From: Utricularia gibba
Taxonomy: Eukaryota; Plantae; Magnoliophyta
NCBI GenBank assembly: GCA_002189035.1
Contig: CM007992.1
Location: 1,302,001 to 1,366,000, forward strand
Direction of reading: 5' to 3'
Length of the DNA stretch: 64,000 nucleotides
The position numbers were made by a program, and so were the translations under genes. The notes beneath the pieces are model-generated. The model was not told the DNA's origin. It saw only the letters and a list, made by a program, of their open reading frames with translations, and did not search any database. Shown here piece after piece: positions 7,601 through 36,048 of the stretch (the stretch's first letter is position 1; every line of letters starts with the position of its first letter).

Positions 7601-9657
7601 CTACGTCTCTGAAAATAAATAAGCCGAATGCCTTTCCACAATGAGCTTGATAAGTGGCTCCTCAACATCAGCATCTGCTTGAGTCTTGTCCCTTGCAACA
7701 ACAATGTTACCGCTCTTCGTAACGACCGTGACTTCCTCTTTACGAGTCAGAAGCTCATTAGCAACCACCATGTGGACATTGTAGTTTTTAAGGGCAACTG
7801 CAGCCTTGTCAAGAAGAATCTGGGCATCTGTCTCCAACTACAACATTGGACAAAGACACAGCATCACAAGACTATCAACATTTTCGAGTGAACAACCTTC
7901 ATCATCAGCCTATACGTTTACATGCTAATTCATCATGTCATATGTCATAGGAAGTAATACAACATAGTTGATGCAGGTTACGCAAATGTGGCACTGATCA
8001 AGCACTTGAAAAAGGCTCCGTCACTGACAAAAAACAAGGAGAGCGCAATCTCACCTTAAAGGATATGCAAAAGGCCGATGGTGCCCAATCCGTCCTCAAT
8101 ATTGAAAGCATTTTAGGCACTTGAGCAAGTCGCATGTCGAGGGGACCAGAACTAGACTGAATTTTATGCATTGTCTGGTTAATAAAAGGATGTCAGGGCA
8201 TTGTTCACTCATATGCGAAAAGATCCAAAAAAAAAAAAAATAGAACTGCCATAAATTAGCTATACTCAGACTAAAAATCTCGGAATTATTTGTTAACCAA
8301 AATGAAACAATAATTAAAATTTAGCATATCTTGTTAAGATGAGCATGCTAGTTATTTTCGCTTCTCAAGATTTAAGATCTAGAATATGGTGTTATGAGTA
8401 GCTGATTTTTACCATTGTCTCCCAAGGAACATAAAAATCAGAAACTGCTGCAGCCAGATAAAACATAGCACGATCACCCAAATTCCTCAATGAAAGTGCT
8501 ACCAACTGCAGAATCTGCACAATATAAATCATTGAACATAATTTTCTTCAACCTCCAATGGTGGACAATAACTCCTCAAAAAGCATATAAAATACGAACG
8601 TTGAAGTTCATAAGATAGACAATCAGTGTTTTGAGAGCAAAATGACCTGAAGATACTCAAAAATCGTTGTAAAGGGAGCTTCAGTAAGGTGTCCTGAGTA
8701 ACAGCCTGTGAAAGAGTTGCATCCATGTTCAGTGTTCCTATCATATCAGCTGCTAGCATCAGAATGATGAAAAATATGATAGAAAGTGGGTGCTCACTGC
8801 ACGATGGTTACCGATGGCCCTCTTCACCGCTAACTCGTGAATTGGATCCACTAGCAAAACAAACATCAAATTTTCCTATTAGTAAAAAGGAAATCCTCTC
8901 GAGTACAGTAAGATACTACTTAGAAAATGGAGAGGGTACTTACCAGTTACAGTTGAGTTACCAGTTACTTGAAAGCATTCGACTATGGGATCTTCAGGAA
9001 GAGCCCTGCAATATGGCTGGCAAGATCCTCTGCTTGCAGTTAAAGCAAGAAAGGAGAAAGTAAAGTTTTGAGTATTTTTCCAATGCTCTGCAAATGTAAC
9101 TAGAATCACCAAGGACCCACCTGCGGTAGAGAAATATAACAGAGTATCCAGCCTTCAGAAAGTATCTGAAATCACAAAAAAACAGTTCAATGCAACTAGA
9201 AAGAAAAACTCAATTTCATTTGACCTGACGATGGACTTACTCAGTGGATGCTGCTCCTCTATGACCTGAGCTGAAATTATCTATATAACGAACACATCTT
9301 TGTTCCAAAGGAACAGTAGTCCCCCAGATGTCACACACACGACTCTGCCAGCCCTTCCATCCTCTGGAAAACAATTACAAAGCTAACGATGTTAAAAACA
9401 GAATGTAAAGTCTAGGTAGATGTCAGAACAAGACTGAAACGTAGCATTATGAGCAGTAATAGAAAGAAAACCGAATTGCACAATGGAACTATCTGTGAAT
9501 CAGTATTTAACTTGCCTCCACGTGAACAGTTTATTTCAATAAAACTTTGCAACTTTCTCTTAATATCATCACTATCTTTTAGAGAAGGAGCGTGGTCAAA
9601 GAAAGATTTGATTTCCTCATAATGTGTCATCATTGCTGAACCGTTTCTGGCGTCCAT
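7601..9657 (-). CDS. PPCS: Phosphopantothenate--cysteine ligase (CoA biosynthesis); a 1-nt frameshift appears in one internal exon
   Basis: Exons encode MDARNG...[91 protein letters not shown] and [12 protein letters not shown]...[15 protein letters not shown]. These match eukaryotic PPCS motifs. Confidence 0.92.
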
Positions 9658-28525: not shown

Positions 28526-28993
28526 TAGAGCTGGGTACGCGTCCGGGTCAACCCGTCCGACCCGCGGGTTGACTCGTAACGAGTCAATCCGTGAATCGTA
28601 CCCGTCACTAGACGGGTACGGTGCGAGTCGAGATAGACGGGTATGGGTTAACGGGCCGTACCAGTGTACCCACTTACTTCTCCTTGATTGTCCATCGTGT
28701 GACATCCATTGTTGGGTGGAAATCATTGCATTGTACTGGTGGTAACCCAAGAGGAGAAGGCTGGGTCCCTCTATGCCACCAACATAAATATTATCCAGTA
28801 AGCAACCTAGGGGGCTGTTGGGCTCATGTGGGAGTTAAGTGAAGTATCGACGAGCCCAAGGACACTTCAACCCGGGTACGAGTCGAGTCAAGCACTTTAC
28901 CCGCACGAGTTTAACCCGCCGAGTCAGCCACTTAATTTTTGATCCGGTGGGTCGGACTCGTACGAGTACGAGTCGGACCCGTACCCAGCTCTA
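28526..28993. mobile_element. Non-autonomous hAT-type element (MITE), 468 bp
   Basis: TIR TAGAGCTGGGTACG(C/G)GTCCG matches at 19/20 positions. A perfect 8-bp TSD TGCACAAG sits at 28518-28525 and 28994-29001. ACCCG/CGGGT subterminal repeats are dense. Confidence 0.93.
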
Positions 28994-29337
28994 TGCACAA
29001 GACCGGGTTGCTAAAGTCCGGGGATTCATAAAACTTTAATGTACTTATATTCAAAATATTTTTTTATAAAAATTATACAATAAGTAACTTAATATACAAA
29101 AATAAATTTTATATAATGTTTAATCAATGTTTCTAAAGAAAATATGTATTTGGTTTGAATGATGAGGTAAACACATTTGACCTCCTAAACCCTAGTTAAA
29201 CATGTATAGGCGCGTTTGGTTGCTCGGTTTAGGTGGGTTGCGGCATGGGTTTAGACATAAATCCACGTTTGGTACGTGAGTTTCAGGTGGGTAAAAATAA
29301 ACCCACATGTTGACCATAAATCGGACGGGAACCCGTG

Positions 29338-29395
29338 GAGCTGGGTTTAGCTAAACCCAAGGGGGGGGGGGGGTTGGTTTAGCTGAACCCAGCTC
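29338..29395. repeat. Subterminal inverted repeat (20-bp arms, one mismatch) with a G13 run in the loop
   Basis: GAGCTGGGTTTAGCTAAACC (29338-29357) pairs with GGTTTAGCTGAACCCAGCTC (29376-29395). Confidence 0.85.
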
Positions 29396-29712
29396 GGCAC
29401 TTCCACTTTTGCCCTTGTGTGAACTTCATTTGAACGCAGATCTACAACCCAGATTTGTTTGTGGTTTGCCGGTGGCGTCGCCTGTTCTTTGAGCGCAAGA
29501 GGGTGAGTCTTTCGGTAAGTATGCTTTTCTATTCTTGGTGGGTTGGCCCACGGTAGCACCGTGAGAGGCCAACCACGGCAGCACCGCATAGTGGATTTTT
29601 ATCTGTGATTTTCCAATTTCAGAATATGTGGTGTTGTGTCAATGAACTTATTTTGGTCGATTTTGGTGATTGTTGAGGGGTCATAGATTTTTTCACAGAG
29701 GGTCATGTCATC

Positions 29713-31028
29713 TTGAGTGCGGCAGCAGCAGTTTTGACTGAATACTTGGTGCAGATGAATGTGTTAGTATACTTACATTGGAAGAAATATCGTAAGGGAT
29801 ATAGGGTGCGACACCAGTATTCACTTACATACACGATTCCTAGAGAAGTTGAGTTTATTAGTAGGTTGGTGAGTGATGTGAATAGCGCATCCATTGATAA
29901 TTTGAGAATCAGCCGAGATGCGTTGGGTATTTTATATAGCCTATTAGAAAATCATTCTAACTTAAAAGGCTGGAAAATATGTAACAGTTCCGGAGATGGT
30001 TTGCATTTTTTTAGAAATATTAGGTCATCATAAAAAATTGCGGGTGCAGAAGCATGTCTACGGGAGAAGCACCGAGACTGTGCTTAGGTGCTTGCAAAAG
30101 GTGTTGCATGCGGTGCTTTGCCTCCATGAGGTTTTGTTAGAGATCCCAGTAGTTGCTGCAAAACGTGCATCCGAAGGGAAGTTTAAACACTTCCAGGTAG
30201 ACACATCTTTCATGCTTCTTTTTACGAATGTGTATCCTAAAATTGATTATGTATTTGCAGGGTTGTGTTGGAGACATAGATGGTACATACATCGGTATAC
30301 GAGTTAACAAAGGTGATGCTGCAAGGTACAAAAATCGAAAAGGGGTGATATCCACCAACGTGTTGGGTGTATGTGATGAACACATGAAATTTATATATGT
30401 GCTTGCTGGGTGGGAGGGGTCTGCTGCAGATAGTCGGGTGCTAAACGATACACTCTCACGATCCGACGGCTTCCGTGTACGCCCAAGTATTTCACTTGTT
30501 TAGCCCTTGCGCATGTGATTCCAATGATTTTATGCACCATGTATACGTGATGACACATGAACATAATACCTATATGACAATGGATACGCCAATAGGGAGG
30601 GCTTTTTGGCACCATACCGTGGGGTTCGTTACCACTTGAAGGAGTGGGGACAGGGAAATGGAGCACCCCAGAATGCGAAGGAGCTATTCAACATGTGGCA
30701 TGCATCAACCAGAAATGTGATCGAACGAGCTTGGGGCTTGATGAAGATGCGGTGGGGTATACTACGGATGGCTAGCTACTATTCCGTAGACACACAGAAC
30801 CGCATTGTATTAGCATGTGCTTTACTGCATAACCTCATTCGAAAGGAGATGGTGGTCGATCCCCTGGAGGATCAGGTCCCATTGGACTTCTAGGATGAAG
30901 CTGAGGATACGAGTGATCTAGAAGACGTCACAACATCTGCAGAAGGCAATCAGACATGGAATAGGTGGCATGACCAGCAAGCCGAGGGGATGTACACCGA
31001 GTGGCTGGCATCCCGCAGACGCCGCTAG
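29713..31028 (+). pseudogene. PIF/Harbinger (HARBI1-like) DDE transposase, inactivated
   Basis: Motifs GCVGDIDGTYI, FIYVLAGWEGSAADSRVL, YLYDNGYANREGFLAPYRGVRYHLKEW, FNMWHASTRNVIERAWGLMKMRW and ACALLHNLIR. Lesions: frameshift near 29970, degraded second intron acceptor near 30560, and premature TAG at 30891. Confidence 0.93.
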
Positions 31029-32034
31029 TGTAGCACTGTATTAGTAATTGTCGTGTTAGTGAATTTCCTAAATTCCCATTCGGAACCTATCATGTCGTGT
31101 GTACTGTATTGCTAAGCACAACTATGTGCATTGCAAAGTCATGTCCTAAATTCCCGTTTGTACTCCAACCTTGAACTTGAAATTGTCGAGTATTTGATAG
31201 TTGCTGCACAAATTGTTGGGATTGTACCATAGTGTCATGTCTTACCATGGGTAACATGGTCAGACATGGTGGATCATTGGAGCCAACACCGCGATCTTGA
31301 GTTGAGGTGCTACAGAAGCTTGTAGGACACCAAAGTTGTTGGTAGCACCACGTGTTTCATCGTATCCGGTGCTGAAAAAAATTAGATATTAGATGAGTGG
31401 GAAGCTGGTGCATAGTAGGAGGGTAGTTGGCAGAACATGAATGCGCCTTTTCATCAAACACCATGATCCGTAAACTCCGATGCATCGGAACGCCTGGGCT
31501 ATGCCCCGTTTAGTGCTGCACCGCATGCTTCCTCGTATCCGATGCTGTCAAGATTTAGAAGTACATGCGTATGCAGTTGGTGCATATTAACGTGGGTGAT
31601 TGGAAGTACAATAATACTCGTTTTGATCAAACACCGCGAAAACATAATCCGGTGTTTATAAACACATGAGCTACACTACGCATTCTGCACCACCGCGAAA
31701 TGCGTATCCGGTGTTCTAAGTTCCATAAATAAATCGGCAAAAAATATTGCAGTTATCCAGCATTAAATGAGAAGGGTGGTTGACAACCGTACAACGCTAT
31801 TAATACCCCCTGTGCACAATAAAGGCGTCTGACAATGTGCACTTTCCAAAAAAACTTCATTAATTTCGCCCATCCAACTCCACCCTTTCGGAAAACGTGC
31901 AGCAGCACCGCAAAAACCGACTCCTTGACAAATTCTCAAGAACAGCGTCGCGACGGTGAGAACCTTTGCCGTCAGCACCACGTGTTTCAAATTCTTCGTT
32001 GCCATCGTCGGCTAGCACGCCTATTGTTTTCTAG

Positions 32035-33848
32035 ATGTTGGCGTGTGAGAAACTACATATCCGCTTCTCAATTCCCGACGGTTACACGATGTGGGATAAA
32101 CAAACGGGCGAAACGTCGGACGGCGAACCACCATCTAGAGTTGGAGCATCGGGATTTGCCATCAGCACCGAGCACTTTCAGTGTGGATTGTGACTCCCCC
32201 CACCCCCTTTCTTGGTGCAGATACTTGCTGCACTCCAGATCCCATTCTCCCACCTCACACCACGTTCTGCGGCGCAGGTTCTCGCATTTCTGCAGATCTG
32301 TGAAGAAGAGGACATACCCCCGGAAATGCGTGTCTTCTTTGCGGTTTCTGTTTATGTCCAACGTAAGGGGAGTCCGCACTACTCGCTTCATGGAAAACCT
32401 GGTGTGGTTCTGGTGACAGACGTGAGATTGGTGGACCAGTTTTGTATGGGTATGCCCACCCACCGCTGCAAAATGGCCAACAACGTTGACAGTGTCAGAG
32501 AATGTGGGACACCCATTAGGTAACCATACAAAATAATTTCAGTGTTGCACACGTCTTGTGCAACAGTACTCATGTTTGTTGTTGTTTTCGTTGTAAACAT
32601 AGAGGTGTTGCCAAAACGTGCGGCAAGGAGGTTTGTGAATTTGTTCTCTTGCAGAACAAAGTCCTTGGAGGACGTCTTGCCCCCCTTCGTCAATGCCCCT
32701 AGGACACACCATCTGTGGTGCGGAACCCCTCGACACCGTCGACAACGTACGAATACAAATGATGATCCTGAGGAGGTGACCCATGAAGAGGAAGAAGATG
32801 TGCAGCCAGAAATCAGGGGCAACAAAGACGAGCCAACACCAATCTGGACACACGACGACGGGTGCGATGCTGCCACTGCAAAATATATCGAAGTGGAGAG
32901 ACTGTACGCAGAGAATCTTGATCTCTGTGGTCGGCTTGCATGGTATGAAGCAAGGTGGCCATATGGTGGATTGTCTAGTGATAACACGGCCCCACCACGG
33001 AAGTTGCTAATATTTGACGTGAATGGCGTAATTGCGGATATTGTGTATTCTCGCGAAGTCAGATGGGGGGGCGCCGAAGCCGGATGCCGTCATTTACGGG
33101 CAAAACGGTAATGCGGTGTCATCGATATGCATTTAATATTTGGTGCGTCTGTCACCACTATTTCTTGTGCTTGTAGTGTATCTTCGACCAGGTGCACGTG
33201 AGTTGATACAGTTTTGCATGAAACACTTTGACGTTCCCATCTGATCTTCAAGAGGATGGTAAGACTGATCATCTTGCAGCCAAGGGGGTCCGCGTTCTTG
33301 CTGACATCTGATTTTTCTGACCACATGTGGCAGGGAACAATTGCACGATGTGGTTCAGTGATTACTAGGGCCTGCAGCAACCAGCAAGCTCGTCTTTCAA
33401 TGGGATGGATCAAGGTGTGTGGACACAGGCTATCCGGTGCACGACAACAGGAACAACATGGTTAAGCTTAAGCTTTTGAATCATGTATGGGGCGTCAACA
33501 CCAAGTTCAAGAGCAAATATCACCTTCTTAATACGCTTCTCATCGATGATGTGCCGTACAAGTCACTACACAATTCGGTGAGTTTCCGGTAGCGCTCATT
33601 CTCCACCGTCTTGCCTCTGATTATTGTTTACTTTCATTGAACAGCTCGAAAATGCCATATTCCCAACCACATTCAAGTACACCGCGGTGAATGATTGTTC
33701 GCTGGTTCGAGGGGGAGATATTAGGTCATTCCTGGAAGCCCTCATTGACAACATGGATGTACCCATGCACGTCGATCGCCGTCGGGTAGGTTAACGTCCA
33801 ATAGACGAGGAACACCCATTGTGGAAGCATTACAAGACTCTTGTCTAA
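32035..33848 (+). pseudogene. Third gene inside the Harbinger: Transposase_28-like N-terminus, acidic linker, and FCP1/NIF HAD-phosphatase-like C-terminus; exons 32035-32519, 32603-33107, 33177-33258, 33334-33577, 33645-33848
   Basis: N-part: GL*LPPPPFLVQILAALQIPFSHLTPRSAAQVLAFLQICEE...DWWTSFVWV. C-part: RKLLIFDVNGVIADIV..PDAVIYGQNVYLRPG..FCMKHFDVPI*SSR..KLVFQWDGSRCVDTG..NTLLIDDVPYKSLHN..NAIFP..SLVRGGDIRSFLEAL..G*RPIDEEHPLWKHY. All four introns are GT-AG and phase-consistent after two frameshift corrections (about 32425 and about 33068). Confidence 0.8.
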
Positions 33849-34263
33849 TTGACGGCGTACCTTTGCAATTGCATGGATCTTGCGTGAACTATCGTATGCT
33901 GACCTTGTTAGTTTTTAATCAATCACTGATCGCGGTGGCACCGCATGTTGTAACATCCGGTGTCATCACTGGATTTGGAACCTTGTGTCTAGACGTGGTG
34001 CTTCGTAATATGTAACACCAACGTGGTGCTAGTCCATAACTACTCGATAGCACCGCTCTGAATGTGATGGTAGTTGCAGTACCGTGTTTGTGGAAGAGTG
34101 CTCAACAACGAAACGCCGTGATTGTTCTTACGCGGTGCTTCCACGTACGAAGTCAGAACACTATCTACCCTTTGTAGTTCTCATATCAGTTTAAAGGATG
34201 ATTAGAATATGAAATACATCTAGTCCATGAGTCCAACATAAGGTGGAGCAGCACACAACAGAT

Positions 34264-35313
34264 TTAAGATCTACGTTCGGATACTAAACCACACACAATA
34301 AGCTCTCTCTCACAGTCGCTAGAGGCAAGGAAATAGCGCAACCTCGTAGGGTTGGAACTAATCGTCTCTACTATGGTAAAACATTCGATGGCAGTTAATT
34401 GCACCGGCATACCTCTAATGATCTCCCCTGCCTGACGTTGATTATCCACCAACTCCCGTGCTTGCTGCACCACTGTTAATCCCAAGTGACGTAGCTCTTC
34501 GCATGTGCGCACGTTAAGCTCCTTCATTTTTGTGATAAACTACACAGCATCATCGATTCCCCTCGGTCCCTTGCCGCTTCGTCTAGAGCACCGCGATGAG
34601 TCGGTGCTGTTGTGTGATTCGGAGTCCCTACTAAGCGTGATGTTGACATCCTCCGCGACATAACCAATTGGGTCACAAGGTGTGTCAGCATACGAGAAGT
34701 TCATATCGTGTCCAGTGCTATCCGGGTCCAAAGGGCAATCCGAAGACACTTCCAGATTCTCCCCCACATCTTCCATCAATTTCCTCTTCTTGGTCGCAGC
34801 TACATAGCTCATCGTTTTTTCTCCTGTAGTCTGATCCTTTCCAAAGATTTCCTGCCACTCCATTTAATACGGCCACGCCTTGTGTCTTAGGGCGCGCAAT
34901 CTGGGTGCATGCTGACATAATAACACGATCAGCACCGGATATAACACAGCGACAACAGGGCATACATACCTGATCAATCTCCTTCCAAACCTCATCGTCT
35001 ATGTCTACGGTGTAGGTCAGCTCACTGAAACCGGTGCATGACCGTGATAGAAAATCTATAAGGAGGTAGTAGTATTTTTTCTAGGTGTGCACCTTGCTAG
35101 ATATTTGGGGGTGTGCACGGATGTCGGTTCCAAGTTGGAGTTTCAAAAACTCTGTCTCTAACGCTCAGTGATACCCACCCCTAAAACCATTCTCAATTTT
35201 CCAGCCTTCTTTCACTATCTGCTTCAAAGCATGCAATAAGTCTTTCTCCTCATCTGAATTCTAGGCACGTTTCGTTTTTTGTGAGACTCTTCCACCACAT
35301 TTGGGCTATGCAT
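34264..35313 (-). pseudogene. PIF/Harbinger Myb/SANT-like DNA-binding protein (ORF1), inactivated
   Basis: KRA*NSDEEKDLLHALKQIVKEGWKIENGFRGGY...HPQISSKVHT*KKYY...VDIDDEVWKEI|...AWPY*MEWQEIFGKDQTTG...YFLASS. In-frame stops at about 35262, 35166, 35082, 34865 and 34541. Confidence 0.88.
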
Positions 35314-36048
35314 ACCTGCAATCTGTGCTGGAGGAAATAAAACAGCAAGAACAAAGCACCTAAACCGAATAATTACCACAAGTAAACCGTAAAATTCACT
35401 CAAAATTCAACGGATTTCAAACAAGAAACCTTACGCAACGAAGGGAGTATACAAACTGGACTGAACCCATGGCTCTTCACTCTCAATTACTTGTGAAAAC
35501 GAGGGATCTCGTCGACAGGTAGCACCGCGACAACGGACTGTGAAAGTCGGTGGACGAAGGGGGTAATGGTAATAAAGAGGAATATGTCTGAATGGGTAAA
35601 GTGGGTGTGAAAGTAGGTGCACGAGTGTGAAAGGCTATATTGGTAAATTTCCATAAAAATTATGTATAAACCCAATTTTATACCTACCTATCAAACATAA
35701 GTTTATTTAAACCCAAATAATGTAAACCCATCAACCAAACATGATTCACAGAGATTAAACCCACAAAGTTGGATTCCCTAAACCCAAATAAACTAAACTT
35801 GGATTTAGGTCAAATCCAGCAACCAAACGCGCCCTATATGTGTGTCAATATCTTATTATTTCTAATTTAACATTTTCACCTAATTAATTGGAAAAGAAAA
35901 AGAGTTTATTAAAGGGAATAATATAATTCACTTTTAATAATGATAGATTAAATTTTGAACTCAATAATAAGGTTTCACCTAATGCTTAATAATTTAAACC
36001 CTCCTAAATATGAAGCCTCTAACCAAACAAGCTCTAGGTGAACAACCT

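Follow-up and report, generated by a model that had tools for sequence, protein, structure and literature searches.

The window analysed here, a 64-kb stretch of contig CM007992.1 of Utricularia gibba, contains at positions 29208-35834 a PIF/Harbinger element bounded by terminal inverted repeats (TIRs) and flanked on both sides by TAT. PIF/Harbinger elements are the textbook two-gene transposons. Between its TIRs this one encloses the three genes that a preliminary description had placed there: a transposase gene (+), a third gene of five exons (+) and a Myb gene (-). The third gene, hereafter the cargo, sits between the convergent 3' ends of the other two. The features, in window positions, are the following.

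29205-29207: left target-site duplication (TSD) TAT, identical to the right TSD
29208-29230, + strand: left TIR, with the core GGCGCGTTTGGTTGC at 29209-29223 (inverted-repeat and 15-mer searches)
29240-29395: left subterminal repeats, with TGGGTTTA / TAAACCCA motifs, a G-run and a 20-nt palindrome (repeat listing and sequence)
29713-31028, + strand: PIF/Harbinger DDE transposase pseudogene, with at least one intron near 30200-30260, stops and frameshifts (Pfam, frames, homologues)
31344-31690: 173-bp unit duplicated in tandem, in the transposase-cargo spacer, spacing 172-173, 75-79% identity (repeat listing)
31750-32034, + strand: presumed promoter and 5' UTR of the cargo, with a AGCACCGC motif at 31904 (sequence, motif census)
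32035-32519, + strand: cargo exon 1, ATG and Transposase_28 (TRP28) domain, in-frame TGA at 32191-32193 (Pfam, Atlas, gene model)
32520-32654, + strand: cargo intron 1 (GTAACC...TTGCAG)
32655-33107, + strand: cargo exon 2, encoding an acidic linker followed by the first part of the HAD-like domain (LLIFDVNGVIADI), +1 frameshift in the G-run 33065-33071 (gene model)
33177-33258, + strand: cargo exon 3, VYLRPGARELIQFCMKHFDVPI-stop-SSRG, with a TGA (33242-33244) private to this copy (gene model, contigs)
33334-33577, + strand: cargo exon 4, which encodes the NIF-like core (...LLIDDVPYK...) and has a TGA (33359-33361) private to this copy (Atlas, contigs, gene model)
33645-33794, + strand: cargo exon 5 and stop codon TAA at 33792-33794 (gene model)
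34264-35260, - strand: Myb/SANT-like pseudogene (Myb_DNA-bind_3 type), with an intron near 34864-34965 and at least three stops (frames, tblastn)
35660-35800: right subterminal repeats, five copies of TAAACCCA (sequence and repeat listing)
35812-35834, - strand: right TIR (inverted-repeat and 15-mer searches)
35835-35837: right TSD TAT (sequence)

Ends and core genes of the element

The TIRs and the TAT duplication (29205-29207 and 35835-35837) of the preliminary description were both recovered. The terminal inverted repeat is exact over 15 of 15 nucleotides and extends to 22 nt at 91%. Exact matches to the 15-mer GGCGCGTTTGGTTGC are confined, within the 64-kb window, to the two ends of the element (29209-29223, +, and 35819-35833, -); 0.66 matches would be expected there by chance when up to three mismatches are allowed. 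The outermost bases of the element are unpaired, 29208 being A and 35834 being C. A TSD of 3 bp, typically TWA (TTA/TAA), is expected for PIF/Harbinger elements; here the length is 3 bp, but the letters are TAT instead of the canonical TWA. In other copies of the family the contigs depart into unrelated sequence exactly at 29209, and the consensus of these left flanks, which has low agreement, ends in ...TTAG. Within the 64-kb window the element and the cargo are each present only once.

Pieces of the transposase reading frame match the Pfam families DDE_Tnp_4 (PF13359), at 6.8e-08 and 5.6e-11, and Plant_tran (PF04827), at about 1e-06, and 95 homologues carrying PF13359/PF04827 were found, the best of them 69% identical; its relatives include sequences of 56-69% identity in the tested exon. 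Pieces of the Myb gene align by tblastn (E 1e-6 to 1e-8) to PF12776-annotated genes that adjoin the transposase in three related loci (L002, L004 and L007). A Pfam search with these Myb pieces returned no match, the pieces being too short, as are those of the HAD-like domain described below.

The cargo gene and its predicted protein

The sequence fits the full exon-intron structure claimed for the cargo. The model comprises an ATG, five exons, four GT-AG introns with polypyrimidine tracts and consistent phases (2/1/2/0), and a stop codon; once one G is taken from the run of seven, the coding length is 1413 nt, corresponding to 470 codons. In this copy the gene is damaged by three in-frame TGA stops and one frameshift. 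A first model of intron 1, with its acceptor at 32601/32603, was dropped for a phase clash, and the acceptor at 32653-32654 restores the frame. A putative intron in the 5' UTR at 31956-32034 (GTGAGA...TCTAG) is plausible from its GT...AG borders.

The N-terminal third of the predicted protein is, as judged from its sequence, a Transposase_28 (TRP28) domain. Exon 1 exceeds the Pfam gathering score of PF04195 (27.7 bits against a cutoff of 26.2, E 3.2e-06, model positions 14-62 of 69), and in the Atlas, where it has a score of 0.96 and 195 shared features, 79 of its 100 neighbours are PF04195. The C-terminus looks like a HAD domain of the NIF/FCP1 type, a resemblance suggested by motifs and by the language-model neighbours of one exon. 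The motifs FDVNG, WSS, K and IDD lie colinearly in the C-terminal half, as hhhFDxxG, WSS, K and IDD do in the NIF/FCP1/SCP family of small CTD-phosphatases (PF03031), and 99 of the 100 nearest named clusters of exon 4 (72 aa) in the Atlas are PF03031 NIF (score 0.91, 181 shared features). Exon 5 alone was not recognised in the Atlas. Stop-free pieces of the HAD-like region had no Pfam match at E <= 1, and phmmer against the PDB with exons 4 and 5 gave only chance matches (a response regulator and uL6). The term phosphatase-like, used for the cargo in the preliminary description, therefore stands on the motifs and on the neighbours of exon 4; the Pfam and PDB searches with pieces do not bear it out, and the N-terminal third is Transposase_28.

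The predicted protein departs from the PF03031 phosphatases at the catalytic motif itself, having DVNG in place of DxDx(T/V). The motif reads F-D-V-N-G in this copy (codons 33016-33027), the general-acid Asp being replaced by Asn. This could be a private G>A change (GAT>AAT) due to the decay of this copy; position 33022, in the D/N codon, is absent among the 40 family variants listed. If, on the other hand, the DxN form were ancestral, the protein may have been a substrate-trapping pseudo-phosphatase acting on transcription or silencing factors.

Searches for relatives were extended to proteins and metagenomes. Exon 2 as a query (32614-33078) gave only two low-complexity matches among protein representatives, no homologous proteins were found for the 189-aa reading frame 32542-33111 or for exon 4, and metagenome scans with the TRP28 piece and exon 4 yielded pattern matches, with no relative confirmed by tblastn. 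No relative of the cargo, and hence no donor, emerged from either kind of search.

The cargo in other copies and in other plants

The family was surveyed in the contigs of four DNA runs (X1, X2, X5 and X6), which are too short to bridge whole elements. The contigs covering the element number 1223, 1083, 3067 and 4455, respectively, and their identities to it range from more than 99% to less than 90%. The present element is an old and defunct member of a highly repeated PIF/Harbinger family. It departs from the family majority at about 118 of 1771 positions (6.7%), and most of these differences are G>A and C>T changes on the side of this copy.

The cargo belongs to what was amplified. In X1, 424 contigs fall on the cargo alone, and their distribution over identity classes (49/122/139/114) matches that of the whole element (122/323/435/343). 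The summed depths of cargo, transposase and Myb gene are 222/218/214 in X1 and 179/132/177 in X2; in X5 and X6 the depth of the cargo is only 0.45-0.7 of that of the transposase and Myb gene. The family master carried three genes, namely the transposase (+), the five-exon TRP28-NIF-like gene (+) and the Myb-like gene (-), and these were amplified together. With that caveat for X5 and X6, the earlier view of the cargo as integral rather than random is upheld. The lower depth in these two runs indicates that cargo-less copies or sister families exist, and therefore that the cargo is dispensable for transposition.

Two ways in which the cargo might be foreign to the family were considered. That it is a nested insertion or a chance juxtaposition private to this copy was rejected and has a negligible probability, since in each run the cargo is covered by hundreds of contigs, whose spectrum of identities equals that for the rest of the element. 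That the element is a composite of two repeats, the cargo being a separate repeated or mobile unit that is bracketed by GCACCRC-type motifs and often lies inside Harbinger copies, is highly improbable. Such motifs do occur on both sides of the cargo, which is also flanked by a weak inverted pair (31681-31698 and 33930-33947, 18 nt, 78%). However, chance pairs of equal quality appear in the same listing, and the motif is also present near both ends of the element and inside the other genes. Moreover, the cargo is bracketed by no LTR, TIR or TSD of its own, and its depth never rises above that of the core genes, as would be expected of an independent repeat.

The other copies also allow the damage of the present one to be set apart from the state of the family. 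At 33244, A>G turns TGA into TGG in 136 of 143 of the depth in X1 and in 669 of 726 in X5, and at 33361 the same change accounts for 140 of 140 (X1) and 1431 of 1487 (X5). At two of the three stops of this copy, then, the cargo is open in the family majority, with TGG in at least 92% of the depth. One G fewer at 33065, the form free of the frameshift, makes up a minority of the depth, about 28-40% in X1, X2 and X5 and about 5% in X6. Exon bins of the cargo are deeper than intron bins, 1.74-fold in X1 and 1.83-fold in X5 (Mann-Whitney p = 0.003 each), which hints at constraint on the cargo; host paralogues or assembly effects could also yield such a contrast. The spacer between transposase and cargo is shallower in depth as well.

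Outside this genome the picture is different. No cargo exon was detected at E <= 0.1 in 11 related Harbinger loci of other plants, several of them Lamiales, and the TIR 15-mer is absent from the seven of these loci that were examined for it. The proposal of a distinct Harbinger lineage is accordingly not supported beyond this genome. As all 11 loci are without cargo exons, the cargo is best regarded as a derived, lineage-specific acquisition. The related loci that show both core genes are mostly compact two-gene elements. The canonical plant elements (PIF and Pong, L004 and L007 from Logan contigs, and the Striga, Salvia and Phlomoides loci) share with the Utricularia element the short TIRs, a TSD length of 3 bp, a transposase of the DDE_Tnp_4/Plant_tran type (56-69% identity in the tested exon) and a Myb_DNA-bind_3 partner, and in L004 and L007 the convergent gene order is shared too. 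Their genes, however, are separated by less than about 1-2 kb with no trace of cargo, whereas in the Utricularia element the core genes lie 3.2 kb apart, and this interval accommodates the third gene in full, together with its upstream region and the 173-bp tandem repeat.

Origin and possible role of the cargo

The best overall explanation, to which we give a probability of roughly 60%, is that the element is a dead copy of a three-gene Harbinger family which captured a TRP28-NIF chimera whose protein served the element. An ordinary two-gene Harbinger would have gained the cargo through capture or recombination at the DNA level; retroposition is disfavoured because the introns are kept. The cargo itself would be a chimera joining TRP28, otherwise a domain of the Retand side-ORF, to a HAD domain of the NIF/FCP1 type. 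For the narrower proposal that its protein worked for the element, as a TRP28-targeted CTD-type phosphatase, rather than being ballast, the chances seem about even.

A neutral passenger is the main alternative, and a less probable one: the chimeric gene would have been transduplicated into the master copy and hitch-hiked, in the manner of Pack-type elements or Pifvine-3, with no role for element or host. Most genes captured by plant DNA transposons are indeed non-functional. The 19 non-synonymous against 10 synonymous changes among the best-supported exonic changes of this copy look neutral, no RNA contigs lie over the cargo in two RNA runs (X9 and X10), with no listed RNA run matching the stretch, and both the related elements without cargo and its reduced depth in X5 and X6 fit a passenger. 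Capture of exons and introns common to several copies is documented in the grapevine family Pifvine-3, which is of the autonomous PIF type (Benjak et al. 2008, PMC2528002); since the extra genic DNA is common to several copies, capture does not stop transposition. In Pifvine-3, though, fragments of host genes make up a long captured 5' region, and they can be traced at high identity to host loci (PMC2528002); the Utricularia family, which is highly repeated, has instead an entire chimeric gene placed between the core genes, with donors that were not found. A passenger would also not be expected to be a complete gene with ATG, four intact canonical introns and stop instead of a fragment, to keep its exons significantly better than its introns across copies, or to persist over a family history spanning the above range of identities.

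The nature of the N-terminal domain likewise speaks against a passenger. TRP28 (PF04195) is encoded by an antisense ORF of Retand gypsy LTR retrotransposons and is conserved in nearly all Retand clusters; it is reported only in flowering plants and its role is unknown (PMC11963269). Being itself a conserved transposon accessory domain, it argues for a TE-related role of the cargo. The two contexts differ. In Retand, an LTR retrotransposon, the antisense ORF for TRP28 lacks introns, and no NIF/phosphatase partner is reported (PMC11963269); in the Utricularia DNA transposon, TRP28 is encoded by the first exon of a spliced gene and is joined to a HAD/NIF-like domain. The literature searched contains nothing on a Harbinger element with Transposase_28, a third ORF or an FCP1-type phosphatase, and nothing relevant linking NLI-interacting-factor-like phosphatases to transposable elements; the fusion of TRP28 with a phosphatase-like domain was found in no paper and in none of the eleven related elements from other plants. 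Such a fusion links two unrelated transposon classes via a shared accessory domain, and the many natural copies are on offer for testing how TRP28 acts. A bolder version, which we consider rather unlikely, is that TRP28 is a portable accessory module of plant transposons, recruited here by a DNA transposon, fused to a CTD-phosphatase-like and possibly substrate-trapping domain and, as a fusion protein, selected for aiding transcription or escape from silencing. If true, no earlier Harbinger lineage would have had a third gene that functions, and the case would provide a handle on TRP28 function.

Accessory genes of other superfamilies offer a parallel. The anti-silencing activity of VANC from VANDAL21 has been shown experimentally, and a similar anti-silencing or host-manipulation role for the cargo, as put forward in the preliminary description, would be speculation by analogy. 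To our knowledge the TRP28 and NIF-like domains are unrelated to VANC, so that the analogy is conceptual only. Mutator-like and CACTA elements with ULP1 or VANC likewise carry a cellular-type, non-transposase gene in their standard set, but their proteins are unrelated to the cargo and, while the function of VANC is demonstrated, any function of the cargo would be putative. Genes for ULP1 proteases are the accessory genes of KI-MULEs and of CACTA-ULP (PMC2528002). A high-copy Harbinger family with a complete, spliced third gene would lengthen this short list (VANDAL/VANC, KI-MULE and CACTA ULP). Were the cargo a mere passenger, the family would still represent a clean and abundant whole-gene capture by Harbinger, which is rarely reported.

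Under the preferred reading, that of a captured gene serving the element, the family would have moved by the usual mechanism of transposase and Myb protein, and the third gene would have been transcribed from its own upstream region. The motif census found AGCACCG to be common to the upstream regions of all three genes.

Terminal repeats and core genes

The feature at 29208-35834 is a real PIF/Harbinger element with a captured accessory gene. It represents a dead member of a high-copy family, the standard structure of which holds a complete chimeric gene between the convergent core genes, with a Transposase_28 (TRP28, PF04195) part and a part like NIF (PF03031, the FCP1-like HAD phosphatases). 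The preliminary description had the three genes enclosed by inverted repeats and a TAT duplication, and this was borne out. The 15-nt core of the inverted repeat, GGCGCGTTTGGTTGC, has two exact occurrences in the 64-kb window, one at each element end and in opposite orientation, while at up to 3 mismatches the chance expectation in the window is 0.66 matches. The inverted repeat comprises 22 nt in total at 91% identity, with the outermost bases unpaired, and TAT is found on either side (29205-29207 and 35835-35837). In other copies, represented by contigs of DNA sequencing runs, similarity breaks off exactly at 29209 and is followed by unrelated flanks with a consensus ending TTA-G; hence 29209 is a genuine transposon terminus. 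These flanks suggest that the target duplication of the family is usually TTA, unlike the TAT of the present copy. Seven of the eight window copies of the motif TAAACCCA fall within ~170 bp of the two ends, as expected for putative subterminal binding sites. In the left subterminal region there is also a 20-nt palindrome (29338-29357 / 29376-29395), centred on a run of 13 G (29364-29376). A separate unit at 28526-28993, ~215 bp left of the element, looks like a MITE: its 20-nt inverted repeat, TAGAGCTGGGTACGCGTCCG / CGGACCCGTACCCAGCTCTA (95%), has arms 428 nt apart, with extra internal palindromes.

The ORF pieces of the transposase (plus strand) match DDE_Tnp_4 (6.8e-08 and 5.6e-11) and Plant_tran in Pfam. 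Its last exon has 95 database relatives with a top identity of 69%, and those named (Striga, Salvia, Buddleja and Phlomoides) are all Lamiales. The minus-strand gene (~34264-35260) has reading frames resembling Myb_DNA-bind_3. Its pieces, too short for Pfam, gave no match there, and they align (E 1e-6 to 1e-8) to PF12776-annotated genes adjoining the transposase at three loci of other plants (L002, L004 and L007). Several stops and frameshifts disrupt each of the two core genes.

Structure, domains and decay of the third gene

The full exon-intron structure proposed for the third gene fits a model of five exons and four introns.

Exons of the third gene in the five-exon model
32035-32519, plus strand, exon 1
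32655-33107, plus strand, exon 2
33177-33258, plus strand, exon 3
33334-33577, plus strand, exon 4
33645-33794, plus strand, exon 5

The introns start with GTAACC, GTAATG, GTAAGA and GTGAGT, end in pyrimidine-rich CAG or TAG, and their phases (2, 1, 2, 0) connect the reading frames consistently. With a single G left out of the seven at 33065-33071, the coding length is 1413 nt (470 codons plus stop). This G run carries a +1 frameshift in the present copy, which also has TGA stops at 32191, 33242 and 33359.

Exon 1 matches Transposase_28 over the gathering score (27.7 versus 26.2 bits), and its neighbours in the Atlas, a protein language-model cluster resource, are PF04195 (score 0.96). The C-terminal half presents the HAD motifs in series (LLIFDVNG, FDVPI-W-SS, a lysine region and LLIDDVPYK), the catalytic DxDxT position reading DVNG in this copy, and 99 of the 100 named Atlas clusters nearest to exon 4 are PF03031 NIF (0.91, 181 shared features). 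NIF was unsupported by HMM or PDB sequence searches on the stop-free pieces, and exon 5 by itself was not recognised by the Atlas. The phosphatase-like label consequently stands on motif order and the exon 4 neighbours, and is probable but not proven.

The present copy differs from the family majority at ~118 of 1771 positions (min_share 50). From copy to family the changes are mainly A>G and T>C, so that this copy has decayed through G>A and C>T. Where it has stops at 33242-33244 and 33359-33361, 92-100% of the family depth shows TGG, which proves these two of its three stops to be private to it. The form one G shorter at 33065 makes up ~28-40% of depth in runs X1, X2 and X5 and ~5% in X6. 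Of the 40 best-supported differences, 11 are intronic and 29 exonic, the latter with 19 non-synonymous and 10 synonymous changes, a split to be expected when a dead copy decays neutrally.

The third gene within the family

Four DNA runs, drawn from three studies, supplied contigs that were aligned at 80% identity or more (1223, 1083, 3067 and 4455 over the element) and cover the whole element. The third gene alone collects 424 contigs in X1, with identity classes (49/122/139/114) essentially like those of the whole element (122/323/435/343). Summed depth over third gene, transposase and Myb gene is 222/218/214 in X1 and 179/132/177 in X2. The gene is thus integral to the family and not confined to this copy, as had been proposed. 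It did not prove to be a separate nested insertion: no repeat pair or duplication bracketing it exceeds chance level. No second copy of element or third gene occurs in the window. In X5 and X6 the depth over the third gene is just 0.45-0.7 of that of the core genes (29150-35140), and the spacer between transposase and third gene is lower still; the species would have family members without the gene or two-gene sister families, or else copies that are more diverged there. That spacer contains a tandemly duplicated 173-bp unit (31344-31690, 75-79% identity), each unit with a GCACCRC...ATCCGGTGC motif pair.

Eleven loci of other plants, each surrounding a related transposase fragment, were compared (Striga hermonthica, Salvia splendens, Buddleja alternifolia, three of Phlomoides rotata and five Logan contigs). 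None has a cargo exon at E <= 0.1, and matches at E <= 1 are at chance level; the three-gene state is therefore derived and, on this small sample, limited to the family of the Utricularia gibba genome. Of the distinct Harbinger lineage proposed earlier, the high-copy family in its own genome is supported, and a presence elsewhere finds no support in these loci. The core genes, where both were seen, lie close together: in the Logan contigs L004 and L007 they converge as in the element, and L001, L005, L010 and L011 have them in tandem. L002 (Salvia splendens CM031483.1, 9498-15666) departs from this spacing, its transposase (plus) and Myb gene (minus) being 4.7 kb apart, with a B3-domain gene (annotated, 333 aa) and an ORF of 166 aa between them. 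This locus may hold a different cargo in the equivalent position; its candidate TIRs at 8846/16339 are weak.

Proposed origin and possible role of the third gene

Because the third gene has kept its introns, a two-gene Harbinger ancestor would have taken it up as DNA. Grapevine PIF elements (Pifvine-3) hold transduplicated host exons and introns common to several copies (Benjak et al. 2008, PMC2528002), where ULP capture by MULEs and CACTAs is also described. Nearly all clusters of Retand gypsy elements share a conserved antisense ORF whose domain is TRP28; this domain is confined so far to flowering plants and of unknown role, no phosphatase partner being mentioned (PMC11963269, 2025). The TRP28 part of the third gene would thus be of Retand origin. 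Our literature search found no paper linking Harbinger with Transposase_28, a third ORF or FCP1/phosphatase.

That the gene served the element has a probability of about 50%, favoured by its completeness, by exons better kept than introns and by an N-terminal domain that is a conserved transposon accessory domain. Exon-rich 60-nt bins (at least 90% exon) have a greater summed contig depth across the family than bins of at most 50% exon, by 1.74x in X1 and 1.83x in X5 (Mann-Whitney p = 0.003 per run), and the transposase-cargo spacer is likewise shallow. This fits, as a hint, slower divergence of exons during family diversification, assembled-contig depth being a poor proxy for constraint that host paralogues could inflate over exons. 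A pure passenger is the less probable reading, at well under even odds. For a gene serving the element, the anti-silencing role offered in the preliminary description, like that of VANC in VANDAL elements, is only an analogy. The element stretch was in none of the listed RNA runs, and two RNA runs gave zero contigs, which is weak negative evidence.

Once co-carried, the gene would have been transcribed from its own upstream region, which contains AGCACCG, a motif also present upstream of both core genes. This putative shared regulatory or binding site has 9 copies in the 6.6-kb element versus 1 in the other 57.4 kb of the window.

Copies of AGCACCG in the element (motif census)
29555
29580
30068
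31904
32164
34049
34587
34931
35521
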